Below, in pieces: positions 9,099 through 41,301 of a DNA stretch of 64,000 nt (position 1 is its first letter; each line of letters begins with the position of its first letter). A program made the translations under genes and the position numbers. The DNA comes from Convolutriloba macropyga (taxonomy: Eukaryota). The stretch covers positions 22,816,001 to 22,880,000 of the forward strand of contig NC_134477.1 in assembly GCF_964194025.1 (NCBI RefSeq). The letters run 5' to 3'. The notes below the pieces were generated by a model. It was given only the letters and a program-made list of their open reading frames with translations, searched no databases and had not been told where the DNA came from.

Positions 9099-10520
9099 AT
9101 GGCTTCCAGAATGGACTACGAAATCGAATCACCTTACAAGACAGACTCTCCACTAAGCTCTGATGTGGAAGAAGGAGAGCTCAGCCCTGGTTCTGGACGA
9201 TCAAGCCCAGGGACAATACGTGACAACGCATCCGACTGCAGTACACAAACGGATGACCGTTTTGATCGCCCACAGGACAGAGTAACAACCATGAGAATCG
9301 AAATGGAAAATGCAACATTGGAACAAGAGACACAGACAAACCAACGTACACCACAAGAGATAGCAAACCTCATATCGGAAAAACTTCATAAAGCCCGACA
9401 GTCGGATACCCGATGAAATCTAGATTCTTTTCGTAACAAAACAATTGAACAAGCTACAAGCACTAATACACATAGCTACTAGAACAATAGGCCGAATAAC
9501 AAAACTCAGAATGAAACATGTGTATCTCCACCCTTACCAAACTATCCACCACCAGTACGACCACCCCCACCTGATGATTACACAACAGAAAACAATAGTA
9601 TACAAAACAGTGTTCAACAACGCTGGATTGTAAGTAATCCACATCACATTAGACCGAACAACCTCCGGTTTCCTTACGCAGTTACACCGAGAAGTAACAA
9701 TAGGAAATCTTTTTTCCACCATTCTACAAATGACCAACCCCACAACAACTGTTATGGAAACAATTTGGTTTCAAGAAAAAGACCCAAGTACCCTCAGCAA
9801 TACACACAGTAGTAATTATAATACTTTATTATCTTACCGTAACTGGTCTGAAATGCCGTTCGATTCTCGAGATTATAACTTTGTTAAAACACCACTGCAT
9901 AATTTAAAAGATCGCGTCTCGGAGTACTTCCCGCCTCTACCATCCGAGAATAATAACACTGTAAAACGTAGCAGTAAGAATATGGGGAGAGATAAACTCC
10001 ATCAGACAACATACCCCATCTTAAAACAATTCTATAGTCTAACAGAACGCTTTATGTATGATTAGGACTACGAGTTTAAGGTACCAGTAATTTGTACATT
10101 TGACTACCTTGTCGCAAAGGCATCCCAAGACCTTTCGGCTTACAGCGTGTTCGAACATCAAATTTTTCAATTAAGCGTCAACTTCCTACATCCAACACCG
10201 AAGGATGTTCAAAACAACAATTATCGGTTACACGAAACAAAGTTGATTCATAACTTGATATATTATACGTTCCCACGAGATAAAAAGATTAACACTACTA
10301 AGAGTTACATTCTTATTAACGACCAATTAACATCACCGTATTCCTTAAACTACGGATATAAACTAAAATGGGACTATACTATCGGGACTTTACGTAATTT
10401 TGACCCCATTAAGAATTATTACATTTTTCAACCCAAGGAAGCACCGGAACGACCACTAATAGTAGCAATCGAAGCACTTGAACCGTGTGAAGAATATCAC
10501 ACTTACCACTTAGAAGGCAG
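9099..10520 (+). pseudogene. ORF6 of copy A, 5' part (second duplicate)
   Basis: ORFs 9099-9416, 9730-10065 and 10147-10551; truncated by B's LTR at 10521. Confidence 0.7.
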
Positions 10521-10918
10521 TAAGACGTGTTCTGAGCTTACCTTCTTATAGGCTACTTCTGGAACTGTCTTATGGTTGTCTCAAGAATATAGGATACTCT
10601 TAAGGCTTACCTGACTAACTAAAGTTCTAGATCGCTAGTCTGTTACTCTTTTATCTGAGCTTCAGTAGACAGTGCACGGGCCCCAATGCTAAAGTCTAAC
10701 GTATATCTCATAACTAAACAAGAGCGGAGTAGAGAGAAAGAAATATACTTTATTATTATATCAGGTCTATGACTAGTACCGACTAACGGGATAAGTGAAA
10801 AAGGGGTAAAGGGAAGACATGCAAGGAAAAGTATTTTCCCTTTTTCAACCAATCAGGGTTGAGTATTTCAGTCTTTATTTTATTTAAATAAATAAAGTCC
10901 TCAAGTCTTTTGTTGGAA
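10521..10918 (-). repeat. 3' LTR of copy B, missing its first ~16 nt
   Basis: Matches 31369-31774, then breaks at an internal deletion junction (about 10919). Confidence 0.9.
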
Positions 10919-12024
10919 AGGTTCGCCTGATACTTCTTAAAGGTTCGCCTGATACGACACATTGATATTCAACCTTCCAAATATTTCCTTTGGTAATTAT
11001 AATTCCTTTGGTAATTATAACTCCTTTGGGAATTATATCATATTAGTTGTTAATAGATGTACTGTTGTTAGTTGTTACTATAGAAGGATGCATGTTTATA
11101 CATGCGATAGTTTCTTATTTTTATTTACATGTTTAAGAATGATGTTATAATTGTGATTGTTATGTTTTACGATAATCAGTTTATTAAGTGATAAACTGAG
11201 TTATGGATGTGTCAAAATTTTGTTATTCGAATTTTTCGAATTTGTAATATACCTATGTATCGGTTTGTTAGAAACTTACCATTTTGTGATTTAGTTTTAT
11301 CGGATTTGGTTATAAAATACACTTCATACATGTTGTTATTGTGAATACCAATCTTTGAGCTAATGTTATAGAGTAATGTTATTACTGAAAATGGTAGAAT
11401 TGTCATGTCATGACTCAATCTATTGAATAACTATGTACACGTTATGTGTTGAATTTATTGTGCATGTCTGTTACATATAACCTATAGTGTGTTATTATAC
11501 ACTGTGTTGTGCATATTACGTTTGTTACGCTTGTTTATATCTCTTCCTCTTGTTCATACTACAAAATACAAGTTATTTTTTGGTCTTTTCTTTATTTACA
11601 AAAGTGCATATATCTAACTATGGAAAATCTTTGCATATGTACATGTATAGTTCTATCAGCTAAGAATAGGGTAGATAAATACTTAGAAAAGTGAAAAATT
11701 GAGTTCTATCTAAAGTTTATTCTACATCAAGTGCTATACCAGTTGCTATATCTATCAGTAATTATAAGTGATATAAACTGGTGTACAATTGTAGAGGATG
11801 GTACAAATGTAGAGGATTGTACAAAGTTAATGGATGGTTATCTAGACAAATAGATTAGAACTATACCAAATAGTTTGTTCAAACAGTTGGAGTATAATTT
11901 GGTACTGCAATAAGGGTAAAACACATGTGCAGAGAGGCATTCATAGTGGGATACTAATTGTTCAAATTTATTCAATCTACAGTGTTTGGATTTCGACATT
12001 GTTACTTGTTCTCAGTTTGTGTCG

Positions 12025-13676
12025 TTAAAATTTGTCCGTTTGTTTGGGATGATTTGTTCTGCCCCTATAATGCTTGTATTCCTTGAGAAATCGGTCATCT
12101 TTTGACAGAAAATGTGCGAGGAGATTAGTTATTTCGTCAATTGGTACGTCAGTTATCGACGCTTTAACTGTATTCCTTATCTCTTTTTCAATTTCCGTTA
12201 CTTCTCGTTCGTTATTGAATTGTACTCTATTACTAAAGGCTCTATTCGTTACGCTGCCTTCTAAGTGGTAAGTTTGATATTCTTCACACGGTTCAAGCGC
12301 TTCGATTGGTACAATTAGTGGTCGTTCCGGTGCTTCCTTGGGTTGAAAAATGTAATAATTTTTAATAGGGTCAAAATTACGTAAAGTCCCGATAGTATAG
12401 TCCCATTTTAGCTTATATCCGTAGTTTAAGAAATACGGTGAGGTTAATTGATCGTTAATATGTATGTAACTCTTAGTAGTGTTAATGTTCTTATCGCGTA
12501 GGAACGTATAGTATATCAAGTTGTGTATCAACTTTGTTTCGTGTACCCAGTAATTGTTGTTTTGTACATCCTTCGGTGTTGGATGTAAGAAGTTAAAGCT
12601 TAGTTGGAAAATTTGATGTTCGAACAAACTGTAAGCCGAAAGGTCTTGGGATGCCTTGGCGACAAGATAGTCAAAGGTACAGATTACTGGTACCTTGAAC
12701 TCGTAGTCATAATCATACATGAAACGTTCTGTTAGGCTATAGAATTGTTTTAAGATGGGGTATGTTGACTGATGTAGTTTATCTTTCCCCATATTCTTAG
12801 TACTACGTTTTACAGTGTTAGCATTCTCTGATGGTAGAGGCGGGAAGTATTCCGAGACGCGTTCTTTTAAGTTATGTAACGGTGTTATAACAAAGTTATA
12901 GTCTCGTGGATCAAACGGCATTTCGGACCAGTTGCGTTACGATAATAATGGATTATAATTACTGTTGTGTGGATTATTAAGAGTTCTCGGGTCCTTTTCT
13001 TGGAACCAGATTGTTTCCATAACAGTTGTTGTGGGGTTTGATCATTGGTAGACTGGTGGAAAAACGATTTCCTATTGTTACTTCTAGGTGTAACTGCGTA
13101 AGGAAACCGGAGGTTGTTCGGTCTAATGTGATGTGGATTACTAGCAATCCAACTTTGTTGAACACTGTTCTGTAGTCTGTTAGTTGCGGTTGTGTAATCA
13201 TCAGGTGGGGGTGGTCGTACTGGTGGTGGATATTTTGGTAAGGGAGGAGAGACATATGTTTCATCCGGAGTTTTGTTACTCGGCCTACTGTTCTCGTAAC
13301 TATGTGTATTAGTGCTTGTACCTTGTTCATTTGTTCTGTTACAAAACGAATCTAGATTTCGTCGGGTATCCGACTGTCGCTTCTTAGCAATGTGTTCTGA
13401 TATGTGGTTCGCTATCTCTTGTGGTGTACGCTGGTTAGTCTGTGTCTGTTGTTCAGATGTCGCGTTTTCCACTTCTATTCTCATGGTTGTTACTCGATCC
13501 TGTGGGTGATCAAAATTGTCATTCGTTTGTGTACTACAATCGGATGCGTTGTCGCGGATTGTCCCTAGGCTTGATCGTCTAGAGCCAGGGCTGAGCTCGC
13601 CTTCTTCCACATCATAGCTCAGTGGAGAGTCTGTTTTGTAGGGGGATTCAATTTCGTAATCCATTCTGGAAGCCAT
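12025..13676 (-). pseudogene. Accessory ORF6 downstream of env (about 550 aa, one frameshift), unknown function
   Basis: ORFs 12885-13676 and 12025-12921 join through a frameshift near 12990-13010. Disordered, Pro-rich N-terminal half and globular C-terminal half. Conserved with copy A. Confidence 0.72.
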
Positions 13677-14148
13677 TTGCTAAAATTGTTACTGTGTTTA
13701 GTACATATTCTCTATTATTACATATGTTACGATTATTATTTTTTAAATTATTTTTGTCATTAGTTGATTGTTATTTGGTGTTGTTATGACTATTTTCCAT
13801 CAGAATTTTCTTGTTACTATCATTACCAAAAAAGTATTGTTATATTAGTATGAATGGATATCGACGGAACAATACTGAACGGTTAGTGTGTTGTGACATA
13901 TCGTTACGAAACATGTATTTATATTGTTTTTGCTATATGAACTATGTGAAAACTACATGTAATTGTGAAATATGAAAATGAAGTATAAAGACGGTGAGAT
14001 AAATATGGTTAAAAGGATTTATAAACTGAAGAGAAGTGTTAGAAAAAGAGGGGTAGGGAAAATTTATCGGGAAAATTTATGAACATCTAAGGAATGTGTT
14101 GTACATTAATTGTATAATTTTAGTTGTTCGTGCACTACGTGGTTGTTG

Positions 14149-17100
14149 TTAATCCTCGTATGTATCCGCCGAATGATTTTCAAAATATGTTACTTCATTC
14201 GTATGTGGTTTGTCGTCGTTTTTTAATATGTCTAAACTATGGCTGCGGTTATGCATTTTGTTAGCCATTATTTTTAATTGGTCAAAATCTATTGGTGGTG
14301 AATTTTGTATAACCATTAGTTTTACTGTTGGTATCAGAAGTTGTTTATTTGTAGATTTATTTGACGTTTGTGGTATTTCATACGATATTGACTGGTTCAT
14401 ATTGTGTGGTTGTTCATATGGATGTCTCTGAAATGATGTAGTTTGTTGTTGTTGTTGTATGTTAGGCGCACTAGGAAGGGGTGTATTGTGATTGATAGGC
14501 GTAGTTGGGAATGATATATTATTTCCCAAGCATTGATATGCAGGAGGTGGAGTAATGAGTTGTGGTGGCAGTGTTTGTAGTTTGTTTTCTGATATTGTTT
14601 TCAGTGGTTCTACTCTTAATGGTTCTTGTTTATATTTTCGTTCTGGTAATGGCGGTTTTTGTTTCTTTGAAGATGAGTTTGTTGTTCTTATCTGTAGTCC
14701 GTTTTTTTTCTACGAATTGTTGTGTTATAATGTTTGTAATTTGTATCCACATAAATTTCTGCAGGTTTATCATTATCAGCATAATCTGTTGTATGTGTTA
14801 TGTCTGTGGAATGCTTCTTTCTGGGTTGATTTCCGTATTGTGTATAATTTTCATCGCTGTTTTTTCCTAAAGATTTCTTTCCAGTTAACACTGGGTTGGT
14901 CGATTTGGAAGTTATATCCATTTATGTACAGGTCTCTTAACCATTTGAGTGATTGTTCGTAGTTTTTGTAAGTTTGTAGTAGTCCTAGTTGTTCAAGTTC
15001 TAGCAATTTTTGTGCGTTTGCTGATGTTGCTTCTTGTAATGGTTTTTCGCGATCTCTCATGTATTCGTGTAATAAATCACGTTTTCGTTCTTGGATTAGT
15101 TGTTCTTTACTGTATATACCTTTTTCTATTAAACTTGATTTACTGAACATGTTATCAAGTACTATTTTTTCTGGTGATACAAAGTTCAATACTGTCTCTA
15201 CTTTTACAGGATATGGTGTTACTCTATATCTTGCTGTTCCTTCAGTGTCTATTGAGATCAGTTGGTCGAAGTTGCTGTGTGAACATTGGACTTTCTTTGC
15301 CCATAAGTATGTTTGTCTTGTTAGCTGATGTACATATTGTACTCTATTATTATACAGTATTGGCATTTTATCGTAACATTCGCGAGTTTGTGATACATAT
15401 AAGGGTGATGATTTTTTTTGCGCGTTTGTACATTTTCATTACCTTTACTCCTTCTTGTTTAACAAAGATTGATCTATCCCCAGTGAGGATGTATCCTAAG
15501 AGTGATGTGTTCTTTTGTACTTGTGTCAGTGTTAATTGTCAAATGTTTCTAGTTTGTTCACAAATTTTCGAGTAAAATTCTATTGCGTGTAGACTTATTC
15601 TCGAGTATATGTTAGTCATGTAAATGTCCATTTTCATGTTCATGTGTGTGTTTCGGTTTACAAAACCTTAGCAGTATTCTTTGTTTTCCTCGTTTTCTTA
15701 TCGTGTTTTTTGTGATGTTATTTGTTTTGGTTTAATCCGTATAAACTTTTCTTCTTCAAATTTTTCTTTTCTCCTCGTTACTTTTTGTCCTGTATGTATA
15801 TCGAATCCGTATTTGTATATTAAGTAAATGTCGTCGTATTCTGTTTTGTGTATTGGTTGAAGCGAACAGCATTCGCCTTCGACTAATGGGTAGATTTCAA
15901 ATCTGGTGGCAATAGTGTCTGTTTTGTTCATTTTTATTTTCTGTGTTCTATCATGTTGTTAAACTGTTGTCCGTTCGGCATTTGTTTCTATCTAATATCT
16001 GTCTTGGTATTTTACCATAAATGCATCAAGTCTAATAAGTTCAAACAATTGACAATGTGTTTGGGGTTCCCAAACTATTGTTGCTTTTGTGAAAGTTGAC
16101 GGTAGACATTCTCCTTTGCGGAGATCGCATGGTTATTTTGTTTCCATATACGATATTTCTTCAGTGTCTAAGTTTAATATGATTGATATTTCTCGTATTT
16201 CTATTGTCCAGCCTAGTATGTCTATTCTGTTTTATTTTCTTGGTTCTTTCATGCAATTTGATTGTGCATTCTTAATTGCGTTTGGTATCCACATTGGGTT
16301 TGTATAATCATAAACTATTCGTCCGTATGGTGGTACCATAGGAGTATCAAGGTCGAATTGTATTCTGCCTTGCATATATTCGATATGTTTCTGAAGTGGT
16401 GGGTTAGCTATGTAGTTAAATGAAATGTTATATCGTGTTGGTTTGTATCTTGTGTTTTTGAGGAGGTTGATTTTAGCGACTTCGTTACGAACTTCATCTG
16501 CATCTAGTATTTTTTTTCTATGTGCATCTGAGACATAGTAACTTGGTCTGTTAGCTCGGATATAATCGGTGTGTTTTGAACACCATTCTACGCGTTATTC
16601 AATTGTTCCTGCAACTGCGTATGCTTTTATTTCTACCGCTTGTGCTTTCGATAATAGCTGTACTTCAGTCTTTGTCATATCTAAATCTAGGGGTTTGAAC
16701 TTACATGTGCTTATTTTGTTTAATTCGTAAAATTTAACATTAGTTATCTCTTCTGCGTCAAAATCGTACTGTTAAATGAAAATGTCCTGTGGTCCTGTTG
16801 CGGAGCCGTTAATATTCTGTCCCGTTAGTTCTACAAAGTCTGTTTTTGTTTGTCGCTTTTGTCTTATATTGTTCATGCCAAATTTCTCTAATATACTATC
16901 TGTTAATCGTTCTCTGTAAAAATTCCAATTTCGTGTCCATTTATCGATGGCTATTTCCCACATCGCTTCGTAGTCTGAACTGTTTTTAAAGTTATCGAGT
17001 TTTTCGATTTTGCTGTTATTGAAAAGTTGTGGATTAGTGTTGATAGAATTATTATTGATTACATGGTGTTGTAGGTTATTATATTTTTGTTGATGAGTTG

Positions 17101-17316
17101 TGTGGAAATTTTAGAGTACTTTTTCATTTCTTGTTTTGTTTTTTTTTTAAAAAGTTTGATTTGTATTTCCATTTTTTCATTTATACGGTCTTTAATGCGT
17201 TGTCTAGCATCAGTTTTTAGTCTTTGTTCTAATTGTATTTTTGTTTCTACTTTCATATATAAGTATATTATTATTAATAATAATATAAAAATAATAGCTT
17301 TTAGTTGAATCGACAT
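14149..17316 (-). pseudogene. env: env-like glycoprotein, copy B (frameshifts; TM anchor deleted)
   Basis: Homologous to 1061-4847. RQKR furin-type site at 16853-16864. About 270 bp corresponding to A 3851-4122 is missing at about 14860-14878. Confidence 0.78.
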
Positions 17317-19100
17317 GTGTATGACAGAACAGTGTGTGGATTGTAGATTGTTGCAAATCCTAATGTTTGTTTTGAATATCTGTCAAACTTGTATATAAAG
17401 TCAATGCAGATGAACGGTGCTGGAAGTGTGGTTGTTACTATTGATGGTGTAGTTGCGTCGAACGGGTGATTAAAGACATTTGTCGTATTTAATTGTTGTG
17501 TTAAACTTAAATTCGAGAGCTGGTGTTGCTAAAACGTTAAGTGCTGCGTTACGTTGTCGATGTGTAAGATTTAAAGTGTTTGTTAGTCTACTTCTTGACC
17601 GATTATAAAGTGTATCACCAAGATTAGTGGGACCGATAACGGTGGAGGTGGATTCCAAGTTTTATGATCTAGTGCGAATAGATATGTATGTTCATTAGTC
17701 CTACTTTTAGTAGGTGGATTTGGGTTAAGTATTGGTGTTGATCTTGTTCTACCAGGATGGCTTGATGGTAATCTTATTTCTGGTATAAAGGATGATGGGG
17801 ATAAAGCTGTATTTCTTGGTGGCTGTAGGGAGTTTGTTAGTTCAACCTGTGGTACGCTTAGAGAGGTATTCGATGATGATGTTTGATTTGATCTTTGTGG
17901 TGTTGTGTTACTACTTGCGGATTGTGGTGATGTTGCTGACAATAGGGAACTATTAGGTGAGTGTAATCGCTGTGCTCGAAAATGTTCTTGAACAAAGTTG
18001 AAATCTTGTCTTTGTTGGAATATAGGTGGTAGAAATGGGTTTGCTCTCAATTCATATTGTGTGGTTATTTGGATTGTACTATTACCAGAATGATCGCTTG
18101 GAGAACATAAACTAAAATTATGTAATGTTGATGTTCCTGTTCTACTTGGTGGTGCTAAGTTTCCTACTTCTATAGGTCTTATTATGTAAGATTCTATATA
18201 TGTTGAACCATATGAAACGATCGTTGAATCTTGTGTTGGGACTGATAGCGAAGATCGACCTCGTGCTCTTAAGAGTTCTCTTCTTTCCAGGCGGTCTCGC
18301 CGTACGGTATATGGATTTTCGTTTCCGGGATTATCATCAATTTCTGGTGAAGTTGGTATATTTGTTAAATCTGTAACTTCGTTATGATGTGGTCTTTCTT
18401 GATGATTATTGTTACTTTGATTTTTATTAGACGACGCAATTTTTGCAGGTTAAACTTTAAGCTCCTGAGCCAGGTCCGTGTGGTGGAACTTGGATGAATG
18501 GTGGTGAGAGTATTATTAGTGGTGTTAAATCTTGTTCTGGTTGTTGTGTTTGTGCTCCTAGATTTGATATCCAAATTTCGTTATTGTCAAGTCTGAGATG
18601 TAGTTGATAAATTATAATGTTACCGTTTAATAGAGAAATTTCAGGAAATCCTATTTGAAAATAAAACTTTTGGGAATGTAGTGTGTACTATATTGATTCT
18701 TCTATATCTGGTATCTGGTATAGGATCAATTTTTATGGTTTTACAAAATATTCTATTAACATTAAACACATGCGTAAGAAGAAATAAATTATTAGTGCAA
18801 TTTTAATAAATTTAAAAATTTCCAGTTCTATTATATCAATAGTGGATTTGCATATATGAAATATATCGGAATGTACTCAATGCATTGGTTTTATTATTGT
18901 ACTGGTGGACTAGCGTAGATGACTCTACGGTTTGAAATAACTTCGTATATTGTTACTGTAGCTAGATATGTCGAAATAACTACAATACACGGTAAAAGAA
19001 AGATAGTTAAGAAAAATATTATTTTAGACAATATTAAATACGTTGCTATTAGTGCGTTAGGAAAATCGATTGTTGAAACTGTTTTTGTTGTTTTCTATAT
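17301..19100 (-). pseudogene. Accessory ORF4: hydrophobic N-terminal segments followed by an S/T/P-rich region (frameshifted)
   Basis: Manual translation gives ALIATYLILSKIIFFLTIFLLPCIVVISTYLATVTI near 18930-19055. ORF fragments 17583-18050 and 17470-17658. Homologous frame in copy A at 1-1076. Start is uncertain. Confidence 0.5.
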
Positions 19101-19314
19101 GTTTTGTTTATTTTATTATTTGTTTGTATATGAATGTTAGATATTATGGTTTTAAACTTTATCCGGTGGAAATGAGATAAAATGCTTCACTGAAGAGTGA
19201 CAGTTATTTACTAGTGTAACTGACACTTGATGGTGCCGCACTATGAAAGTACTGTAGTTCCAAAAGTGTTTATTTTATGTTATTGATATGCAACGATAAC
19301 GATGATAGGTATCA

Positions 19315-19734
19315 TTACTTATTTAATTTTTCAATTTTGTCGTCTGACAATGTTACAGCGTCTTTTTTGCAAACTATTAGAGAAACTGTGTGTAATTTGT
19401 TTATATTGACACACTTGTCTGTGTGAATTTGTTGTTTTAGTTTTTCGAATTCTGTAATTGTTTCAGTAAACGGTGCCGTGTTCTTTAGTAGTTCAAAATG
19501 TTTTTCTCCCCAAAACAGTTTTACTTCTTGTCCAGTTTCTGTTCTTCCTTCTATTAGAAGAAGACAGTTTTTAGGTGAGATTCTACAGTTTGTTAGTTTA
19601 ATACTGTCGTTGTCGAAATGTATATGACAATCTGGTGGATATTCAAGTTCAATATATTCGTCTATTTGAACAAATATTTTTATGCAAAGTTGATTTCTAT
19701 TCAATGATTTCATAAACTCTGACACCGATAGCAT
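19315..19734 (-). CDS. Accessory ORF3 of the element, 139 aa, unknown function
   Basis: Uninterrupted ORF on the element's sense strand with globular-like composition. Preceded by an acceptor-like TTCATTTCTGACAG at about 19777-19790. Confidence 0.5.
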   Translation of the reverse strand: MLSVSEFMKSLNRNQLCIKIFVQIDEYIELEYPPDCHIHFDNDSIKLTNCRISPKNCLLLIEGRTETGQEVKLFWGEKHFELLKNTAPFTETITEFEKLKQQIHTDKCVNINKLHTVSLIVCKKDAVTLSDDKIEKLNK

Positions 19735-22700
19735 AGGTGGTTGTTCATTACAATGTTTACTATAATGATGAATTAGTCTGTCAGAAATGAAATTAAAATA
19801 ATTCAGATTACCTGGTACTGTTGAATCGTTTTTGGCTGAATTTTTGTTGATAAAACAGTTGATTGAAGAAGAGATATTCTGTTAGTTTTAATTTCTCAAT
19901 GAATATTTCGAGGTTTCTCAAATTGGTTTGTCTAGATCGAGAGAGTATGAAATTTGAGAATTTCAGGATTATTTTTTGGCCGTAGAGATGAAATGAGATT
20001 ATGATTTTAGAAATGAAATGAAATGAGGTTATGTTTGTATTTGAGACTATAAATTCAGAAATAGAATGAAGTTTTGAGTAGAAGTTGGAAATTTTTTCTC
20101 ACTGAATATTTGAATTTATGTTTTTGTGTATCAGTTTAGCTGAAATTTCAGATTTTTCAAATGTAGCTGAGGTTGTGACTTGTACGACTTGTGATTTTTC
20201 ACTCAACTGTTTGTTGCCTCTATAATATTGTTGGCATTTGCATACCTTCCGTTTTCTTTTCTTGGTTCTTGAAGTTGCCAATTTTACTAATTTACTGGGT
20301 CTAATTAAACTTTTGGATTCTGAGTTTTCGAATTATAAGGATCTTTCTGAAGTCTCTTCAGTTTTGTTGTTATGATTGTTTTTCCTTTGTAATTGGTATG
20401 TTTGATGGCAGTGTAACGTACTTTTGTCATGGTATGTTAGAGATATTAATTAGTTACTTGATGGTGTTTATTGTCACTTGATAAAATTTAGCTCCAAGTA
20501 GGTTTTTGATCAATGGTATAATTGATGAAGATGGTTGAAGTGGATGGTGACGCCTTTGGTGTATGTCGTTAATGAGTTACCAAGTTGGTGTTTGGTGCAA
20601 ATGGTGCAAATGTCAAGTAGATGGTTGGTTTGCAAACTGTAACTGTTAATTAGTTGTTTGGTATCGAAGTCATGTCGAACGTGTTTGTGTGTATGATTGG
20701 AGTTGTGTTTAGATGAAGTGTTTACTTCAACTGCAAAATGATCTTTGTAGATCTATCATGATAATCACCATTTCGTTCATGGCGTTGAATATGTTAATTG
20801 GTTTGGCATTTTCTGTTTGTTGCTAATTGCGTCTTTAAGGGAACGGTAAGTCCCTGTAATTTGTATGTAAACTCTTTTTATCTGCAAATGAAAGTAGTAA
20901 TTTGTTCCTTTCTTTCCTTGTTCTGTGTTAATGAGGCCCTTGTTACCTTTTGTAATCCTTATATTTTTTCTAATGAGGATACTAATGAGGTCTTTTCCTG
21001 CTAATGATAGCGTGTTGTAAACGTCCGTTTCCTTCGTATGACGTAGGTGGATGGTGGCGTATTATTCAGGTAAAATGTCACTATGGGATTTCCATTTAGC
21101 CTAAATGTCTAATAAGCAGAAATGTCTATTTAGTTGGAATGTGTATTTAGCCGAAGGGCGTTTTACTGATGTTACGCGTTAGAGGTTGTTTGGTTAGTGT
21201 TATGAGCCAGAGGTCGTATGACCGATGAGTAATCAATGTGAACTATATGTCATGTATTTAGGTATTGAGCCGTTTAATTGCCGTTGCTCACTTGTTAGAA
21301 ATACCCTGGTTAGAGTACGCTAGATGTTACTGGATTGTAACACATTACTGGATTGTAACACGTATTGGAGTGTTACGCGTATTTGATTTTTACGCTTAAT
21401 GGATCTTTATACGTCGTTATACGTCTTTTACTCGTTCTGTTTAAATTATCTGTTCGGGAAATAGGAAGTTACTTAAATTGAGGAAGCTATTGAAAAAAGG
21501 AAGTTACTATATTTGTAACCGTTTATATTTATATGTATGTTGTTATTTCTAGCTTCCGCATTGTTACTATTGTGTGTGTCCCGTATTAATTTTTGTCCTT
21601 ATTATTTTTTATCTGTTTGTTAATTTTTACGTTGTTATTACTTGTCTTTTTAATACTTGTGGTTTTTCCTGTTGTTATTACTTGTTGCTATTACTTATCC
21701 TTTTGATTTTGATATTATAAATGTTTATGTATTATAAATGTTTTATATTAATTTCATTTTTCATGTTCCATAGTATTAGCAACTACAAAATGTCTATTCC
21801 ATTCTGCGAGTCCTCTATCGTGTTATTGCGGACATTGTTATTTGATTCTATTTGTGATTTGATTATTTTGTTATTTGATTGATTTGTTTATTGTTTAATC
21901 GTCAGCAAACTCGAAACGTCTATTCCAGTTCCAAGCCTGTGAACATCAAAAATAAAAACAGTTTGTGTTTTATTTTTATTTTTGTTTGTATTATTTGTTA
22001 GTAAAAACTATTTGTATTAGTATATCCTGTTTGGATTTTTTACTTGTTATTTTGATTGTTTGTTTGTTGTTTTATTTGTTTTATTTAACTGATGACGGTG
22101 GATTGGATGGGGATGGTTGTATTGAGAAGGTGGTTGCGGTGGTTGCGGTGACTGATGGTTAGTGATGAGAATCAGTTGTGAGATTGCCAAAGAAGAGGAG
22201 GTTTGATGATGGAAATAATGTTGAAAAAAAGAAGGTGATGGTGGAATGAGAAGAAGACGGGTAATACATTTTTGTTTTATGTTTCATTTTTTAGTTGTTT
22301 ATTTAAATGTCTCATGTGTTCATTTTGTTTCAATAGAAGGTGTTAATTTTTAGGTAAGGTAAACTGCAGTTAAATTCTATAGTATCACTGATTTAGTTCA
22401 TACACTAAATGTTGGTTGGAACAATTGTTAGTAAATACGGATTATATGGTTATGGTTTATAGAGGTTAGTGGTTAGGTGTTGGTTATTAACACTTTTTAG
22501 TTTCAATGTGTTATTATTTTCATTTGTATTTTAATATTGGTGTTTTCATTTGTTAAAATAAATATGCCTTTTTATTCTACGTTTTTACTGAAAAGTGTTC
22601 TGGTGGTATGCACACAAGGTTCGGGTTAGGAGGGTGTGCTAATTCTTTGTAGTAGGGATACTGAACATGTTTTCAAAGTAGTGAAAATACTGAATATGCC

Positions 22701-22982
22701 GAGAGTAGTAGAAACACTGACTGTGAATTGCAAAATCGTAGGATATGTAATAGATACGTAATAAAATAGAGGATACTTATGATATATTATAATAATAAAT
22801 AGAGTTCATTAGTGTAGTACGTAATAGTACAGTATATGTAATATGTGATAGAGTTCAACACTTGTAATGTGTAACCGTAATCTCGTTTGAGATTTCTAGA
22901 TCATAGGAGTGAATTGTCGTATTTGTGTTTAAGATGTAGCAATAAAGTGTATAATCGAATACTGTTAACATACATGGATTAG

Positions 22983-23208
22983 NNNNNNNNNNNNNNNNNN
23001 NNNNNNNNNNNNNNNNNNNNNNNNNNNNNNNNNNNNNNNNNNNNNNNNNNNNNNNNNNNNNNNNNNNNNNNNNNNNNNNNNNNNNNNNNNNNNNNNNNNN
23101 NNNNNNNNNNNNNNNNNNNNNNNNNNNNNNNNNNNNNNNNNNNNNNNNNNNNNNNNNNNNNNNNNNNNNNNNNNNNNNNNNNNNNNNNNNNNNNNNNNNN
23201 NNNNNNNN
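22983..23208. other. Assembly gap
   Basis: Run of N. Confidence 1.
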
Positions 23209-23281
23209 TTTATTATTATTTTAAGAGTGTTATCTTCCTCTTGCGAAGATTGTATTGATGTGTATGTTCTTTATCTGATTG

Positions 23282-24778
23282 TTATAGGCTTGGTTTAGTT
23301 GCAGTTGCTACATTGGGTTGTTTTAATGTTGGAATCTCATTTGTGAGCAAGTAGTTTTGTAATTCTATTTTGATATGTTTTTCTTTTGGATAATATGGTA
23401 CAATGTGATTTCTGTGGATTGTAATCTGTTCTTTATTGTTATCCTTTAATATGTATCTTGTTCTTCTAGGTTTATCTATGATTAGATATGGTCCTGTTTT
23501 CAGTGGTAACAGTTTTTTGGATACTCCGTCAACTTGTTGTTGAATTGTTACTAATACAAAAGTATTCTTTTCAGGTGGTTTTGCTGATCTGAAGCTGAGA
23601 TCCATTTCATCTGTTAATTTTTTCTGCTCTGTAGGATTTTTGTTATAGATTGATATGTGCCGTTCTAATGTCTTTCTTTATCAAGGAACCATTTGGCAAA
23701 TGTTCCTTTTTGTAATTTTGCAATTTTTGGATGATTAAATTTTTTTTCCAGATGAGTGTGTGCTGGCTGTGTGTTACATGCACTTTTCTCTGTTGGATTA
23801 CAATTTCTCATTTCATCTGTAGAGTTGATCCGAGTTTTTTTATTTCGTTGGTTTTCTCGGTTTTTGGTTGAAAACGACTTCATATGGGGACATGCCTAGT
23901 CGTGCATGGTATTGTGTATTGTATGCGTATGGAAAGAATTTTGCTTTCCGTGACCAATTATGATACTTTTTGTCTAGTAGTGTTCTAATGAACTGTCCAA
24001 TTATTCTGTTTGTTCCTTCTACTAGAACGTTCGTCCAGGGTGCATATGTTGAACTTGGTTTAAATTTGATTTCAAAGTAGTTACATAAATGTGTTAACTC
24101 AGTGTTAATGTGTTCCGATCCGTTATCTGATCTAATTTCTTCGGGTAGTCCGAAATTAATGAACCAATGTTCGAATAGTGCTGTAAATGCATAATGTCCA
24201 TTATTTTTTGGTGCACAAATTATCGTTACGTAGTGTGAAAATGCGTCCACTATGACAAAGATGTAGTTGTTTCCTTCAGATGTTGGGTGAATAGGTCCTT
24301 TTGTGTCAATCATTGTCATTTCATAGAAATATGTTTTTGTTGGTGCAAGCTGTTCTTGCTTACTTTTTGTTTTTGTATTAGCTAATACTTTGTTGGTTTG
24401 GCATTGTATGCAATCTGCTATCAGTATTTTTATCCAAACTGTAAGATTTGGGAAATAGTATTTATCCATTATATTTCTTTTGGTTTTTTCAAGGCCTGTG
24501 TAACCTACTAGGTCGATGCAATGGTTATTATAAAAGAAGCATAGTAAAAGTGTTAATGGTAGACAGATTCTTTGCATTGATTTTTTGTGAATGTTGATTA
24601 CAATTTTTGTGATACCGGAGTTTTCATCAATTATAATGGATTTGAATTTGCAAAAATATGCAAAAAATCCTTTGTTTCCACGTATTTCCATTGTTACTGA
24701 ATGTGGTTTATTGTTATGTTTCTTCCCCATTTTCACTTTGTGAAGTACAGGATCTAAGATTTGGGTTTCTTTGATCAA
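23282..24778 (-). pseudogene. pol: Integrase with GPY/F module (disrupted)
   Basis: Degenerate HHCC (NHCIDLVGYTGLEKT..CIQC), IDTKGP, IVDAFSHY, IRSDNGSE, VEGTNRII. KLLPLKTGPYLII in 23282-23605. Confidence 0.93.
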
Positions 24779-25089
24779 GTTTTCAGTTATTTTTGTTTTT
24801 TCGTCATAAAAATGTCTGATATTTTTACATTTTCATAATTTGTTTTTTGTTGTGGTCTTATATTATTTATCAATCTGAAATAATCATCATCATGATGTGT
24901 TGGTCCTTTTTGATTTTTCTCAATGATAAGGTCATTTTTTCTACAATCGGTGATTGCCAATTTTTTGTCTTGTGTTTATATTTTGGGATCAGATTTGTTT
25001 TTGTTTCTGTATTATACTTCTCGTATGAGATGGGTGATATTCATTTTTATCGACATTTATTTCGAAATAGTTATTATGTTTGTTAGCTA

Positions 25090-26600
25090 AAACTGGGTAA
25101 TGTGTGTCAGGGAGGGCTAGGTTTTTTCCTTCTGTCCAAATTATGTGTAATTTTGGGAATTTCATTTATATTAATTGGAATCTATAAACTCTATGATTTG
25201 ATTTGTTCTTTTGAGTAAATAGATAGATGATTGGTTTGTGATCTGTGAATAACACTATTGGGTGGTTTGAACCGGTCAGTAAAAATTCATACTCTGTTTA
25301 ATGTTGACTCTCTGATTAATGTTGATAGTCGCATTTCGATAGGTGTGAATAGTCTGGAATTTGCTGATACTAATTTCATTTTTCTTTCAGTTGGATGTTG
25401 TTGTAATATTGCTGCTCCGATGCCTGTGTTTGATGCATCTGTGATAATATAGGATAGTTTTGTAGTATCTGGCATTGTTAGTTCTAATTTGTGTGATATT
25501 GTTCTTTTCATTTGTTTAAAAATTTGTTGATGTTCTTTTGTCCATTTGAAATCGTTTTCTTTGTGTAGGAGGTTATATAATGGTTGTAATATTGGTTGCA
25601 TACCATAGACGTATTTCGCAAGGAAATTTATTGTTCCCAGGTATCTTTGTAATGCTTTCATGCTTGTTGGTGGTTCCAGTTTTTGGAAACCATCAATTCT
25701 TGAAGTTAATGGTTTTACTTTTTTGTCTCCAATGATGTGTCCGAGAAATTTAACTTTTTTCAACTTGAAGTATGTTTTATCAGGTGCTGCTTCAAGGTTT
25801 TTTTTCAATAATGTTTTATGATATTCTATTAAGGTTTCATACATTTGTGGGTATGAATTGGTTTGAATGAAAATATCGTCGACATATGTGATTACCGTCC
25901 CTTTCCTGATTAAGGGATAGAGAAAATGTGTTAATATCGATGCAAACGCTGCGGGTCCAATGGATATTCCGTAAAATAGTCGTTTGAAACGATATTGTTC
26001 GTTTCCAATCGTAAAATGTGTGTATCTTATTAATTGTTGGTCTAAAAGTGTTTGGTTATATGCGCTGTTGAGATCAGCTGTCGTAAATATTGTTCCGTTT
26101 ATTCGTGTTAGGGCCACATCAACTGGTTCAATTGGCCAGTTGCATTTAGATTCGTCAACCATGTTATTCAAGTATCGTGCATCTAATACTATTTTTAATG
26201 ATTGTCATTTCCGTAGAATAATTACTGGGTTTGTGAATGTATTCCCTGCAGATAATTGTTCTTTGTTTACAGGTGCAATTATGTTGTATTTCTTCAATAC
26301 GTCTAGTAGTTTTTGGATTCTTTCTCTGAGGTGTTTTGGTACTTTGCTTATTCTCTGTTTTTTTGAAAATTGCATCTTTTTTCATAGGTAAATTCAATTT
26401 CACTTTTGTTTTTCCAACGTCGAATTTTGTTGTTGCGTAAACTTGTTTGTATTCTAGTATGATTGTTACTATTTTTTCGAATTCCTCTTGTGTTAAATGT
26501 GAATTTTGGAAATCGATAATTTGAATGAAATCCTTTTCCGATACTGTGTATTTGTTAATATTAACTTTGCATTTAAAATTAGGTTCTCTTTCAAATGTTG
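25090..26600 (-). pseudogene. pol: Reverse transcriptase and RNase H (Ty3/Gypsy type, disrupted)
   Basis: ADLNSAYNQ, FKRLFYGISIGPAAF, TYVDDIFI, VKFLGHII. RNase H motifs IITDASNTGIGA, FTDHKP and IIWTEGKNLALPD. Confidence 0.95.
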
Positions 26601-26807
26601 CTACTTGTTCAACTGTTTCGTTGTCTTGTATACTTAATATTTCGTTAATGTCATTTTCATTTTAATATGTTAGATGATATAATGCTGAAAATAAGTCTAT
26701 CGAATTTGTTTGGTACATTTCTTCTTTATGTTGTTTGAATGTAATGTTTTGATACACTGAACCAATTAGACCTACATTAATTGTCACTTTATGTTGGTTT
26801 TTATTTA

Positions 26808-28808
26808 TTAAGAAGTGTTGAAGTTTAATTTATTAAGAAGTCTATTTATTAAGAAGTCTATGAAGTGTTCTTTTTCTATCGACACATCTTTTATGTCTGT
26901 AAATGATAAACTTTTATATTTGTTTATCGGTTCGAAATAGTACATTGAATTGTAAATTGTTTTTCCGTTTGATTTTTCCATTTGCTTGAATATTGGTATA
27001 GGAAAAGTTATGCTTTTATGTTGATCTTGTTCAAGGTATATTGGTTCTTTGTTAAAAATTGGGTATAATTGAGAGTAATAAGGATATCCCTTTGTACTGC
27101 TCATGAAGAAAGTAATGTCATTATCTATAATTGTGTTAGTATTTATAGTTAGTTCCTTTATATTTACATTTATTGTTTCTATGTATTCTTTGAAGAATGG
27201 AGTTCCAAGTATATTATGATTGCATTGTGTTACGTAAAAATGTATACTAAATTTATGTTGGGGTTTATTTCTGCTGTTTGATGTTTTGTCAGGTGTTAGA
27301 TTTAGTGTTACTGTTCCGAATGTTTCTATAGTTTTATTATTTGCTGCTGTTAGCGTCTTGTTAGCTTGTTCAAGGCGTATATCTGGGTTGTTATTTTTTA
27401 TTTCGTTCCAAATATCCTCGTTCAAAAGATTTAATGTTGCTCCAGAGTCTAATAGAAAATCAATTTCTAGTATTGGTCTATGCTTTGTAAAGTCTTGTTC
27501 AATTTTGTTACACTGGTACATCGGTAGCATCCAGGTTGGGTTAATTTCTAGTGTATTTACTACTGTGTTGCACGTGTCTTCGTTAGCATTATAGAATTTA
27601 TCTAATATTTCTTGGTCTTCACTTGATGATTGGGATGTGTTTTCGTAATCGTCAATTGCAGGTGGTTCATCGTTTTGTCTTTCTGTTTCTATGTTATTTA
27701 TTCTGTTTTTATTTTTATTGTTGTATTTATTTCCGTCTGTTCTTCGATCTTTTGAATGATATCTATCATTTTGTTCTCTTTGCGTTGAGTNNNNNNNNNN
27801 NNNNNNNNNNNNNNNNNNNNNNNNNNNNNNNNNNNNNNNNNNNNNNNNNNNNNNNNNNNNNNNNNNNNNNNNNNNNNNNNNNNNNNNNNNNNNNNNNNNN
27901 NNNNNNNNNNNNNNNNNNNNNNNNNNNNNNNNNNNNNNNNNNNNNNNNNNNNNNNNNNNNNNNNNNNNNNNNNNNNNNNNNNNNNNNNNNNNNNNNNNNN
28001 NNNNNNNNNNNNNNNNNNNNNNNNNNNNNNNNNNNNNNNNNNNNNNNNNNNNNNNNNNNNNNNNNNNNNNNNNNNNNNNNNNNNNNNNNNNNNNNNNNNN
28101 NNNNNNNNNNNNNNNNNNNNNNNNNNNNNNNNNNNNNNNNNNNNNNNNNNNNNNNNNNNNNNNNNNNNNNNNNNNNNNNNNNNNNNNNNNNNNNNNNNNN
28201 NNNNNNNNNNNNNNNNNNNNNNNNNNNNNNNNNNNNNNNNNNNNNNNNNNNNNNNNNNNNNNNNNNNNNNNNNNNNNNNNNNNNNNNNNNNNNNNNNNNN
28301 NNNNNNNNNNNNNNNNNNNNNNNNNNNNNNNNNNNNNNNNNNNNNNNNNNNNTGATCGTTGTCTGTATCTGTCACTTTTGTTTGAATCTTTCCTATAATG
28401 TCTTTGTCCATTATTGTTATTGTAATTATTATTATTATTATCATTATTCCTGTTGTACGATGAATGCTGTCTTGAGCGACTGTGGTTTGTGTATCTTGAG
28501 CTTGATCTGCTATTGTTGTATTTGTTATGATTATTGTTTCTGTTGTAACTGTTAGTTCTACTTCTGTTATAAATGTTTCTGTTATAGCTTCCGCTTCTAT
28601 TGTTATAATTATTATTCGAATTACGATGTCCTTGATAGTATCGATTGTCTCTGCTATATGAGTTATTATTTGAATTGTTTCTTGATTGTGATCTGTATGG
28701 TGTTCTGCTTCGGGAATTGTGGTATACTGCTGATGTTGATGGTAATTGTCGTCCGTTGATGTTATTCGAATCAATTCTTCTGTTTGGTAGATTCTGATTG
28801 TTCCTCAT
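26808..28808 (-). pseudogene. N/R/S-rich linker plus retropepsin-type aspartic protease (spans assembly gap)
   Basis: FLLDSGATLNLL active-site motif and HNILGTPFF downstream motif. Confidence 0.88.
27791..28351. other. Assembly gap within a low-complexity gag-pol linker
   Basis: Run of N. Confidence 1.
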
Positions 28809-28819
28809 ATGACTATAAA

Positions 28820-31265
28820 ATGATCTTCTTTTTGGTCGTCTTATGCTTTCTCTTTGTGGTCTTTAAGAGACTTTAAAGCATCTTCCTTTTGTGTGACCGT
28901 GTGAACTGCAATAGCTGCAAAAAAGTGCAAACTTTGGTCTTCATTAAAGTTTTTTCTATCGTATGTGTTATTAATTCCGTTTAGAACGCTACAGATTGTT
29001 CCTTCAAATTGTTCTAAAACATTTTGGTTAAGATCGTTTATGTTGTTACAAGCTACATTCATTTGTTTGAGATCTTCACTAATGTTAGTTGTAGTTTGGT
29101 TGACTTCATATAGTCTTTTGTGATTGTTTGTTATTGTTCTTGTTAAATCCATTTGAACTATTTTGTCAACTAGTGTTTTGAATGGCATTTCTGGTTCTCT
29201 TGGCGTTTGTTTATGATTGGCATGTTTTTTCAAGGCTGCTGTTTTTAATTCGTTATCCAAGCATCTAATGAATGTTTGATTCATTACGCTATTTCTATAA
29301 TCTTCTGTATATAATGAGTATGCTGTTTTTACAAGTGTTTCTATTCTCAGTGCGAGTGATCGTAATGATTCATTTGTGTGTTTTTGTAATTGTTGTAACA
29401 CTACTTTTGCTTGTTGTTTTGATTTCTCTGAGTCGAATATGTCTAAAAAATCTTTACAACATGTTTCCCAGTCCAATTTGGTTTCACTTGGAAGAGTGGA
29501 ATACTACTTTTGAGCTGGTCCTTGTAGTGTATGTAATATTAAAGCTGCTCTTTTTACATTTCATTTATGATGTCCTGGTTTGTTTACTGGTTCTATGCCG
29601 CTACTAAATATCATTGCTGCAACTATACTGTTTAAATATTCTTCAACAGTATATGCTGGATCTGTGCCGTCAAATGGTCGTTTTGTTGTTGGTACTAAAC
29701 CACCACTAATGTTTTGTTCTATTTGTGGCTCTTCGTGTATACTCATTGATGTTAATTGTTTATAGAAGCGTAAGGGAAGGGTCTGTTACTGTCGTTCCTC
29801 TTTCTTCTGTTGTGATTGAATTTGATCTTTTAGTATGATTTTCCTGTTGTCTATTGTTTTGAATATTAGTATTTTGTATGTTATTATTATTTGAGTTTCT
29901 GTCATTATTTGAGATTCCGTTTTCTGATCTTAGATTGTTTTGTCTATTATTGTTATCTAATGTTTTTTAAAGTTTGTCGAATACCATTTCGATTGCTTCT
30001 TCTTGTCTTCTTTCTATGTTCTCGTTAATTTGTCTAAATTTGTTTTCTATATTATTAATAAGTTTATTGGTATGATTTGTTACTTTTTCTGTTTTTTTTG
30101 TCGTTGAGATCTTGATAATTACACATTTGTTGTTCCCAGAATAGTTCATTTTGTTCACGGTTATCGTTCAATGAACCAATATATGTGTTATTCCTGTTAT
30201 AATTATATTGTGTTGGGTTCTGATATTTTCGTCTAACTTTTTGATTTAGTGATGGTGGTAGCAAGTTTCCGATTCTCGCATCTCTGTCTTCTGAATCAGA
30301 TATATCTATTTCGTCTGCTATGTTCTGTTGATTTCCAAATAAATTTGATGTTAACTGTTTATCTGGTTTTATTGTTGATTTTTGTTTTGATTGTAAATTT
30401 AAATTTATTTGGACATCTTTTGGTGTTGATGTCGATGTTAGACTTCTTGACAAGTTAAATGATGAAGAACCTGCTTGTCTTTGGTCTTCTATTTTTACAT
30501 AGGTCTCTAATCCTTCTATGAAGTTGATGCTATCTGAACATACTCTTAGTGTGCTTTCAAAGTGTTGCGAATAGTATTCACTGTCCCAAATGTTTTTAAG
30601 TTTGTCACTTAAGTTTTGGATTTGTTCTTGAAATTTTTCTCCAAACTGTATTCGTTTGCCATTAATGTGTTCAAAATTATCTAACCAGAATAGGAACAAG
30701 AACTCTGAGATAATTTTAATTTTATGTCTGATGTTGCCGTTTTTAGTTCTTGTTTTAGTTCCATGATTTTTGTTAACCAATTGTTATAATTCATTATGTC
30801 GTTTTTTAGTTTGTCGTTTACTGACTGTATTGGTTTCTTTTGATCGTTTATGTATACGGTTGTATTTCGTAGTATTTCGCACGTTGTAGATGGTATTGCT
30901 GTTGCTTTTTTTCTATCTTGAGAATCTTCGTGTCGTTTTAAGAATGTTTTGAACATATTAGGTAGTGTTGTTTCATTTTGGAAATTATAGAATGTTTTTC
31001 TATTTCCTTTATCGTCTTTTAAGGTAAATGTACATTGTTTATTAAGTTGATCTCTATCCAGTAGTATTACTGGTAGATAGTGTGCCAAGTGATTTCTATG
31101 AATGTTAATTTGTTTTATATGTTTTGTTTCGTTGAAGAGGTTATTCTTCAAATTTATTATTATTCTGTAAATAATTTCGCGGTTTTCTTGCGGGCAATCG
31201 CTAGCAATTGTAAATGGTGTTAAGAAATGGTTTGTTATCGACTGTGGTTGATGGTTGGTATCCAT
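28820..31265 (-). pseudogene. gag: gag with long N-terminal extension, capsid-like domain and CCHC zinc knuckle (frameshifted)
   Basis: ORF fragments 30681-31265, 30064-30780, 29967-30158, 29561-29746 (FDGTDPAYTVEEYL) and 28841-29476 (WETCCKDFLDIF..LQQLQKHTNESLRSL). CSYCSSHGHTKGRC (C-x2-C-x4-H-x4-C) is encoded at 28878-28919 in an adjacent frame. Confidence 0.85.
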
Positions 31266-31350
31266 CTTTTTTTTATTATTTGTGAGATAATATTTTTAAT
31301 TTAATTCCGTTATGGAGATTCGAAATTTGTTATTTTCTTTGGTTTATTTC

Positions 31351-31366
31351 GGAACTGGTCGCACCA
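31351..31366 (-). promoter_or_regulatory. Putative primer-binding site (TGGTGCGACCAGTTCC); priming tRNA not identified
   Basis: TGG-initiated tract 2 nt downstream of the 5' LTR end; absent after the 3' LTRs. Confidence 0.7.
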
Positions 31367-31368
31367 GA

Positions 31369-31790
31369 TAAGACGTGTTCTGAGCTTACCTTCTTATAGG
31401 CTACTTCTGGAAATGTCTTATGGCTGTCTCAAGAATATAGGATACTCTTAAGGCTTACCTGACTAACTAAAGTTCTAGATCTCTAGTCTGTTACTCTTCT
31501 ATCTGAGCTACAGTAGACAGTGCACGGGCCCCAATGATAAAGTCTAACGTATATCTCAAAACTAAACAAGAGCGGAGTAGAGAGGGAGAAATTTACTTTA
31601 TTTTTATATCAGGTCTGTGACTAGTACCGACTCACGGGGTAAGTGAAAAAGGATAAAGGGAAAACATATAAACATTTAAGGAAAGGTATTTTTCCTTTTT
31701 CAACCAATCAGGGTTGAGTATTTCAGTCTTTATTTTTTTTAAATAAATGAAGTCTTCAAGTCTTTTTGTTGGAAGTCAACATTGACTCCA
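31369..31790 (-). repeat. 5' LTR of copy B (422 bp, TGGAGTCAA...CACGTCTTA)
   Basis: Near-identical to 10521-10918, 6757-7154 and (inverted) 35952-36376. Bounded by the TSD on one side and the PBS on the other. Confidence 0.92.
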
Positions 31791-32023
31791 GCAGCGTAAC
31801 GAATCGAGCCTTTATTAATATCATACAATTCAATAACCAACGAAAAGTAACTGATATCGAAAAAGAGATACGGAATACAGTCAAAGCGTCGATAACCGAC
31901 GTACCAATTGACGAAATAACTAACCTCCTCGCACAATTTCTGTCGAAAGACGATCTTTTTCTTAAAGAATACAAACATTATAGGGACAGAACAAATCATC
32001 CCAAACAAACGGACAAATTGTAA
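31791..32023 (+). pseudogene. ORF6 of copy A, 3' part, resuming after the B insertion
   Basis: SVTNRAF...NHPKQTDKL* matches the C-terminus of 12025-12921. Confidence 0.85.
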
Positions 32024-32174
32024 TGACACCAACTGAGAACAAGTAACAATTCCAAAACTCTAATACTCTTGACTGAGTAAATTTGCACATTCTTATCTAA
32101 CTATGAATCTCCTTCTGCATATATGTATTTCCTTTTTGCAGTAATAATTTATACTTCAACTGTTCGAACAAATT

Positions 32175-41066: not shown

Positions 41067-41301
41067 ACAGGACTAAAATAATCTGGCCCCTGCGTCTGGA
41101 AAGACGTGATTAATGAAAAATAAATATTAAAAAAAATTGAAAAACATTGCACGTTCTGTAAAAAAAAATGCTAAAATTGCTGATGTTAAATGGTGAAAAT
41201 CGTTTCATTACCACTAGAAACCAGGCAGTACTATTATCAAGCATTAGAGGAGTTTCCTTGACACCTACGGCTGATAAAACTCAAAAAATGACAAAAATTA
41301 A

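Follow-up and report, generated by a model that had tools for sequence, protein, structure and literature searches.

Several giant long terminal repeat (LTR) retroelements are known, among them Burro, Ogre and the foamy-like endogenous retroviruses (ERVs). We analyzed a stretch of 64,000 nucleotides from Convolutriloba macropyga (RefSeq assembly GCF_964194025.1, contig NC_134477.1, positions 22,816,001 to 22,880,000), hereafter the window, which contains on its minus strand an LTR element termed copy B (10521..31790). Copy B is very probably an old, inactivated insertion of a high-copy, ~22-kb Ty3/gypsy-type endogenous retrovirus-like family, lying inverted in open reading frame 6 (ORF6) of an older family member, termed copy A.

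Metazoan Ty3/gypsy elements with an envelope (Env) of the herpes simplex virus/glycoprotein B (HSV/gB) type, the 'ancient errantiviruses', have a Chuviridae-like env and are widespread (Chary & Hayashi, eLife 2026, PMC13524379); the screen in that study was capped at elements of 10 kb and at a gap between pol and env of at most 1-3 kb. Copy B resembles these elements in its Ty3/gypsy pol, in the arrangement of gag, pol and env on one strand between LTRs, in a predicted class III gB-like envelope related to Chuviridae-type glycoproteins, and in the presence of many copies per genome. It differs in that pol and env lie ~6 kb apart, separated by a 3.5-kb spacer and two genes, and in having an extra gene after env and a gag of ~800 codons, for a total of six genes in ~22 kb. 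Gypsy elements with a gB-type env were thus already known; new here are the size, the spacer, the long gag and three orphan genes, in a layout that is larger and more gene-rich than that of the enveloped gypsy elements surveyed so far.

Copy B can be compared with several other described systems. Anakin and other mosquito BEL/Pao elements (Dezordi et al. 2020, PMC7642597) are likewise LTR retroelements with a chuvirus-like glycoprotein gene; membership of BEL/Pao was rejected for copy B, which contains no BEL/Pao Pfam domain and has RT_RNaseH_2 and Integrase_H2C2 domains, with Ty3 as best match, instead. The planarian giant gypsy element Burro/GYPSM1 (PMC6431247) is also a giant invertebrate LTR element that shows homology to env and has room for additional coding sequence. 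Its product is a single polyprotein of ~5,000 aa in which an F-type env, placed in frame, separates gag from pol, and in which host-like domains are recognisable (PMC6431247), whereas copy B has separate genes after pol, a gB-type env ~6 kb past pol, and orphan proteins, and was not assigned to the Burro type. Additional ORFs past pol, accompanying env or replacing it, are shared with the bdelloid rotifer LTR elements and the foamy-like fish ERVs, which provide a precedent for 'complex' layouts. In the rotifer elements the captured ORFs encode a GDSL lipase, a DEDDy exonuclease and a dUTPase (Rodriguez et al. 2017, PMC5408684), while in copy B three domainless ORFs co-occur with env in one element; the foamy-like fish ERVs, as cited in PMC6431247, reach up to 17 kb and carry accessory ORFs. 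ORF capture past pol, on either side of env, is therefore on record (PMC5408684, PMC6431247), and the statement in a preliminary description of this DNA that typical elements have at most three ORFs does not reflect the state of knowledge.

Structure of copy B and its relatives

The features of copy B are listed below (window coordinates; strand; description).

10521..31790; minus; whole of copy B; 21,270 bp, two N runs included
10517..10520, second copy 31791-31794; no strand assigned; target-site duplication CTGC, directly outside both LTRs
31369..31790; minus; 5' LTR, 422 bp, termini TG...TA
31349..31366; minus; primer-binding-site-like sequence, TGG-initiated, starting 2 nt past the 5' LTR (read from the sequence)
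28841..31265; minus; gag, ~800 codons, broken; capsid-like PF03732 match at 29318-29473, below cut-off
23282..28808; minus; pro-pol, broken; Pfam domains in the order protease (PR), reverse transcriptase (RT), RNase H (RH), integrase (IN)
27330-27467; minus; PR, weak aspartic protease Pfam match, E 0.04
25731-26099; minus; RT, Pfam match (RVT_1)
25308-25544; minus; RNase H, Pfam match (RT_RNaseH_2)
24389-24529; minus; IN zinc domain, Pfam match (Integrase_H2C2)
24038-24310; minus; IN core, Pfam match (rve)
23444-23542; minus; SH3-like domain (Tf2-type), weak Pfam match
27791..28352; no strand assigned; N run (562), in coding sequence between gag and protease
22983..23208; no strand assigned; N run (226), just past the integrase stop, in the non-coding spacer
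19735..23281; minus; non-coding spacer from integrase to ORF3, ~3.5 kb
19315..19734; minus; ORF3, 139 aa, open
17470..18574; minus; ORF4, S/T/P-rich, broken; bounds approximate
14149..17316; minus; env, ~1,100 codons, broken; gB-like core 15010-16771; start may be 17256
12025..13484; minus; ORF6, ~487 codons, broken once (one frame change)
10919..12024; minus; 3' tail, with one unit of a 351-bp repeat at 11554-11872
10521..10918; minus; 3' LTR, first ~16 bases missing or replaced

Copy B was delimited by its LTR pair, by self-comparison and by its uniform strand composition. Its two LTRs (~400 bp each) are in direct orientation and ~92% identical, and the 5' LTR shares 92-93% identity with those at 10521-10918 and 35952-36377. 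The preliminary description had reported a closing LTR with an exact 4-bp target-site duplication, and CTGC is indeed present on both sides; an independent confirmation of the duplication comes from the two halves of copy A, which overlap by 4 bp on copy B's own ORF6. Direct LTRs with a target duplication of 4-6 bp and the pol order PR-RT-RH-IN (the PR match being weak) are those of Ty3/gypsy elements, whose LTR termini are normally TG...CA as opposed to the TG...TA of copy B. The polypurine tract region is deleted in copy B, and copy A shows merely a short purine run there. A tRNA scan found no tRNA genes in the window, and an Rfam scan of the window was likewise empty.

All sizeable ORFs of copy B lie on the minus strand of the window, which is its sense strand; the genes had rightly been described as sharing one strand, and the identity of that strand is corrected here. 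The plus strand of the element has a positive GC skew and a negative AT skew, the minus strand being the A-rich strand from LTR to LTR. The gene order is gag, PR, RT, RNase H and IN over 8.1 kb, followed by a downstream region of 12.4 kb in which the spacer, ORF3, ORF4, env, ORF6 and the tail follow one another on one strand. The gene-bearing region of ~12 kb reported earlier does hold ORF3, ORF4, env and ORF6, but ~3.5 kb of it is non-coding. Taken with the pol domains and the PF24664/gB-like env described below, the LTRs and the target duplication uphold the earlier view of a Ty3/gypsy LTR element laid out like a retrovirus and equipped with a viral-type envelope gene.

Comparison loci (L002 to L006) belong to the ENA assembly that also contains the window (ERZ25071359). 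L002 shares 70-76% identity with copy B, and the two are colinear over the part extending from ORF3 to the 3' LTR; L003 is colinear with copy B from the 5' LTR to IN, and L004-L006 are colinear with it from ORF3 to env. A protein library reduced to one representative per 50% cluster contains 177-203 clusters each for gag, ORF3 and ORF6, with many contigs in common.

The gag and pol genes

In the gag gene of copy B, a region of ~400 aa that matches no Pfam domain precedes the capsid-like domain. Relatives of gag with a length of 541-631 aa hold both PF03732 and a region starting ~100 nt after the LTR. Because these relatives carry both parts, the first 400 codons represent the N-terminal part of a long Gag rather than a separate gene.

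The best solved relative of the RT-RH piece is the yeast Ty3 RT (E 4e-25), and that of the IN piece is the yeast Ty3 Gag-Pol (E 4e-13). The RT-RH piece aligns colinearly to Ty3, with no tether-sized insert between RT and RH; assignment to the complex retroviruses (Retroviridae) was rejected on this ground, the likeness being one of layout only. Errantiviruses in the wide sense, defined by gag, pol and an F- or gB-type env on one strand within LTRs, include copy B. The compact three-gene layout, with env directly after pol in less than ~10 kb, is not that of copy B, nor does copy B fall into the genus Errantivirus in the narrow sense (insect gypsy, ZAM and Idefix, with a baculovirus-F-type env), its env being of the class III/PF24664 type.

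The signs of the GC and AT skews are equal on either flank of both N runs. The edges of the 562-N run align colinearly and on the same strand to L003, where they are ~50 bp apart; by this alignment, either the stated length of the run is doubtful or copy B would have extra sequence at that point. Because open frames enter the 562-N run from both flanks, it cuts coding sequence between gag and protease. ORFs of 666, 358 and 310 aa that span the N runs were discarded as artefacts, N having been translated as X.

The envelope gene and the mode of spread

The env genes were located by tblastn with family and distant glycoproteins. In copy B, the bounds thus obtained agree with the ~1100 aa given in the preliminary description; in copy A, the gene is located as follows.

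1061-4847; plus; env of copy A, broken; gB-like core 1893-4172; PF24664 match 3321-3638

One open piece of the env of copy A matched PF24664, the Monjiviricetes fusion glycoprotein, with 30.2 bits (cut-off 27). A 335-aa open env piece has 139 relatives, which are mostly fragments with 50-90% identity on large contigs, while a few distant full-length relatives (746-769 aa, ~22-29% identity) match PF24664 at 1e-34 to 1e-39 (118-136 bits). The AlphaFold model of the 335-aa piece reached a predicted local distance difference test (pLDDT) score of 80 and a predicted TM-score (pTM) of 0.72. When the model was compared with the PDB, the top matches were all herpesvirus gB (probability 0.99, E 9e-5), followed by GP64; in a viral library, xinmo-, chu-, qin- and rhabdo-like glycoproteins came out on top (E 2.5e-10). 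The TM-scores were low (0.3), the modelled piece being part of a multi-domain protein. Sequence searches of the PDB with the env profile and with the single sequence P0113 returned nothing useful. As judged from its sequence and the model, env belongs to PF24664, with a predicted class III (gB-like) fold.

Env begins with a charged stretch, followed by a basic motif and the gB-like core, and ends with a hydrophobic (transmembrane) anchor and a tail of ~270 aa. With the glycoproteins of the Monjiviricetes (chu-, xinmo- and rhabdo-like; PF24664), env shares the sequence family, and they are its top fold matches in the viral library. Env differs from them in its low identity (~22-29%) to the nearest full-length members, in its location within a retroelement, and in the extra charged N-terminal stretch and the tail, which bring it to ~1,100 codons as compared to ~750. 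The nearest full-length glycoproteins (P0113, P0119, P0124, P0136 and P0138; 746-1102 aa) are encoded on contigs of 4-13 kb that look like RNA-virus genomes. Two short motifs were observed in env. The tail contains a PPxY-like motif and proline-rich stretches in copy A (3936-4847) and in L002 (5668-6567), which represent two subfamilies, and a basic KRQKR-type motif stands before the gB-like core; by their letters, the former looks like a late-domain motif and the latter like a protease-site motif.

By analogy with the gypsy-type errantiviruses and the retroviruses, the 5' LTR would have driven a full-length RNA that served as both the genome and the gag/pol message. Reverse transcription would have been primed by a tRNA, and integrase would have generated the 4-bp duplication. 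The four downstream genes would have been read from spliced or internally started sub-genomic RNAs, for which the 3.5-kb spacer may hold the signals, and Env would have mediated membrane fusion for cell-to-cell transfer.

Several points weigh against this picture of an enveloped, retrovirus-like family. The placement in the Metaviridae is suggested by domain content and best matches, and splicing or an internal promoter by analogy. A signal peptide could not be firmly placed in Env, and the start of env varies between subfamilies. The gene is fragmented in four of the five copies examined, no close full-length env was found among the 139 relatives of the env piece, and env may have been unnecessary for the family's later spread. 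Finally, ORF3 or ORF6 served to find the comparison loci, so that copies carrying these genes are favored among them.

The strongest rival explanation, which we nevertheless consider rather unlikely, is that the family spread mainly as an intracellular retrotransposon, with env and perhaps other downstream genes dispensable or dead in recent bursts and the layout a relic of an infectious phase. The copies with env in pieces are B, A, L002 and L006, the close relatives among the 139 are all no longer than 425 aa, and ORF3, ORF6 and gag are often open, unlike env. However, the ratio of nonsynonymous to synonymous substitution rates (dN/dS) of env, calculated for copy B against L002-type copies, is 0.05, the lowest of all genes between subfamilies, and in L005 the env frame stays open over 569 codons or more, until the locus ends. 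Moreover, long genes break before short ones under equal decay, and open env copies can hide in a library with one protein per 50% cluster.

Genes downstream of pol

The spacer has ~10 interruptions per kb on both strands, in copy B and in three other copies, as compared to ~2.3 per kb in decayed coding parts. Its similarity to L004 is patchy yet colinear, with no codon-phase signal. In all genes, by contrast, substitutions concentrate in one codon phase (third-position excess), which is seen neither in the LTR nor in the spacer; the L002/L004 pair, at ~90% identity, is too alike for this test. In the same comparison as for env, dN/dS was 0.13-0.17 for ORF3, 0.15-0.22 for ORF4 and 0.22 for the N-terminal part of ORF6, whereas wrong reading frames gave values of 0.7-3.5. 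In the C-terminal part of ORF6, dS was saturated and dN was 0.14, so that no ratio was computable; a low dN with saturated dS is, at the sequence level, the pattern of strong constraint. ORF3 is represented by 203 protein clusters, and its length is fixed at 136 aa across ~100 of them, down to 63% identity. ORF6 is represented by 177 clusters, and its open relatives of 483-490 aa (e.g., P0160, 487 aa) cover both pieces of the gene in copy B.

Searches for homologues of these proteins were negative. Pfam at loose thresholds gave no match for ORF3, ORF4, ORF6, the N-terminal part of gag or their relatives, and in the PDB a sequence search with ORF3 returned only a chance-level match and a profile search with ORF6 returned nothing useful. 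The preliminary description had suggested structure prediction for each ORF; this gave the gB-like model for the env piece, but a pLDDT of only 41 for the C-terminal part of ORF6, modelled with 33 relatives.

The absence of any homologue outside the family in Pfam, the PDB or elsewhere, the poor model of ORF6, and the low complexity of ORF4, which is open in one of five copies, are what would be expected if ORF3, ORF4 and ORF6 were chance or decayed open frames and not genes. This explanation is very improbable and largely refuted by the low dN/dS of the annotated frames as opposed to the other frames, by the low dN in the C-terminal part of ORF6, by the constant length of ORF3, and by the open state of ORF6 at its full length in several diverged copies. 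ORF4, for its part, is open for 398 codons in L006 despite an A+T content of 67%, and has a coding-like density in L005. ORF3, ORF4 and ORF6 are real genes of the family, being colinear in other copies and, as their substitution patterns indicate, under purifying selection, and homologues outside the family are not detectable by Pfam and PDB searches.

The earlier proposal that several extra genes belong to the element is thus borne out, with amendments to two of them. ORF6, given before as ~550 aa, is present but has ~487 aa in open relatives. ORF4, described as having a membrane part and an S/T/P-rich part, is S/T/P-rich, but its membrane part is unsupported: a hydrophobic ORF upstream of ORF4 in copy B was tried as part of the gene and rejected, since it is not conserved in L004. 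We also observed a 101-aa ORF after ORF3 in L002 (1683-1988), L004 (3879-4184) and L005 (3879-4184), with 82% amino acid identity between L002 and L004; the ORF of the L002 subfamily is cut short in copy B (window about 18641-18769), and it may represent either the beginning of ORF4 or a small gene of its own.

That ORF3, ORF4 and ORF6 would act as accessory proteins, in expression, assembly or dealings with the host, is a guess unaided by homology, and we regard it as doubtful. Also tentative, if slightly more probable, is the wider proposal that the family represents an invertebrate branch of the Metaviridae whose genome, of the complex-retrovirus kind, evolved independently of that of vertebrate retroviruses. 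In this branch, three lineage-specific accessory proteins and a long internal control region would regulate sub-genomic expression, particle formation or host defence, and a class III fusogen derived from a negative-strand RNA virus would serve cell-to-cell transfer.

Decay and nested context of copy B

Self-comparison of the window indicated that copy B is inserted, inverted, inside ORF6 of copy A, a nesting of a dead copy that is absent from the preliminary description. The features concerned are as follows.

1..6756; plus; older copy A, left part: end of ORF4, env, and ORF6 from about 5500; runs off the window
31791..36377; plus; right-hand part of copy A: final ~240 bp of ORF6, satellite array, tail, and 3' LTR at 35952-36377
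3656-7410 and 7408-11174; plus; tandem duplication of 3.76 kb, 98.5% identity, spanning the A/B junction

Interruptions (stops and frame changes) were counted as lower bounds. Copy B has at least 6 in gag, at least 10 in pol (between the N runs), none in ORF3, at least 3 in ORF4, at least 13 in env in addition to a deletion of ~270 bp, and at least 1 in ORF6. Copy A has at least 7 in env in addition to a foreign insertion, and at least 5 in ORF6 in addition to the insertion of copy B. As compared to copy A and L002, copy B lacks ~270 bp in env and ~720-820 bp before the 3' LTR, reaching ~16 nt into the LTR; the two deletions relative to copy A reported earlier are therefore real. Copy B is old and dead, with all genes broken except ORF3 and ~1 kb deleted, and of the ORFs previously listed as genes, ORF3 is open while every other one is in pieces.

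An extra LTR copy is present at 6757-7154 because the 3.76-kb stretch across the A/B junction was duplicated after the insertion; this tandem duplication is either real or an assembly artefact. The tail of copy A contains a 351-bp satellite array (32174-34606; 6.9 units, 97% matches). Because copy B has a single unit and L002 (8850-8941) part of one, the array is taken to have grown from internal sequence of the element. The insertion in the env of copy A (1644-1846) belongs to a dispersed repeat of ~200 bp, a second copy of which, with 85% identity, lies at 41299-41495. A second, independent case of self-nesting was observed in L003 (1-7000, minus strand, against 7001-10862, plus strand), in which one copy is inserted, inverted, just upstream of the ORF6 of another; this may reflect a preference for the family's own sequence or merely dense nests of transposable elements.

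The remaining explanation, that the 12-kb region is foreign to the element as a composite of nested insertions, an unrelated integrated RNA-virus glycoprotein gene or a mis-assembly between two LTRs, could draw on the frequent nesting in the family, on the local rearrangement evident from the 3.76-kb duplication and the foreign 200-bp repeat, and on two joins in copy B that fall at N runs, but it is the least probable of all and largely refuted by the recurrence of the order ORF3-ORF4-env-ORF6-tail-LTR in copy A and in the divergent L002 up to the LTR, by the uniform strand composition from LTR to LTR with an exact target duplication, and by the similar cluster counts of gag, ORF3 and ORF6.

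Outside the elements, no clear host gene was found in the window, the only hint of host coding being an ORF at 43073-43369 (minus strand) that resembles Calx-beta at E 2e-5, short of the Pfam threshold, and could be a host exon. The repeats outside the elements include a 213-bp tandem pair with a third copy (37572-37997 and 39007-39219), and a diverged duplication of ~800 bp and an array with a 32-bp periodicity (60305-62016; 63142-63867).

Significance of the family

Enveloped gypsy elements are now regarded as ancient and widespread, and the limits of the large survey behind this view exclude elements that are longer than 10 kb or have env far from pol. The family to which copy B belongs reveals a gene-rich class missed by such screens, whose six genes, including three orphans maintained by selection, span ~22 kb and occur in hundreds of copies. 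It offers a natural case for studying the gain of accessory genes by retroelements and the limits on the cargo of LTR elements, and it adds a further host-integrated record of chu- and xinmo-like glycoproteins. The self-nesting, in turn, together with a satellite array that arose from the tail, bears on how such families shape the genomes in which they reside.

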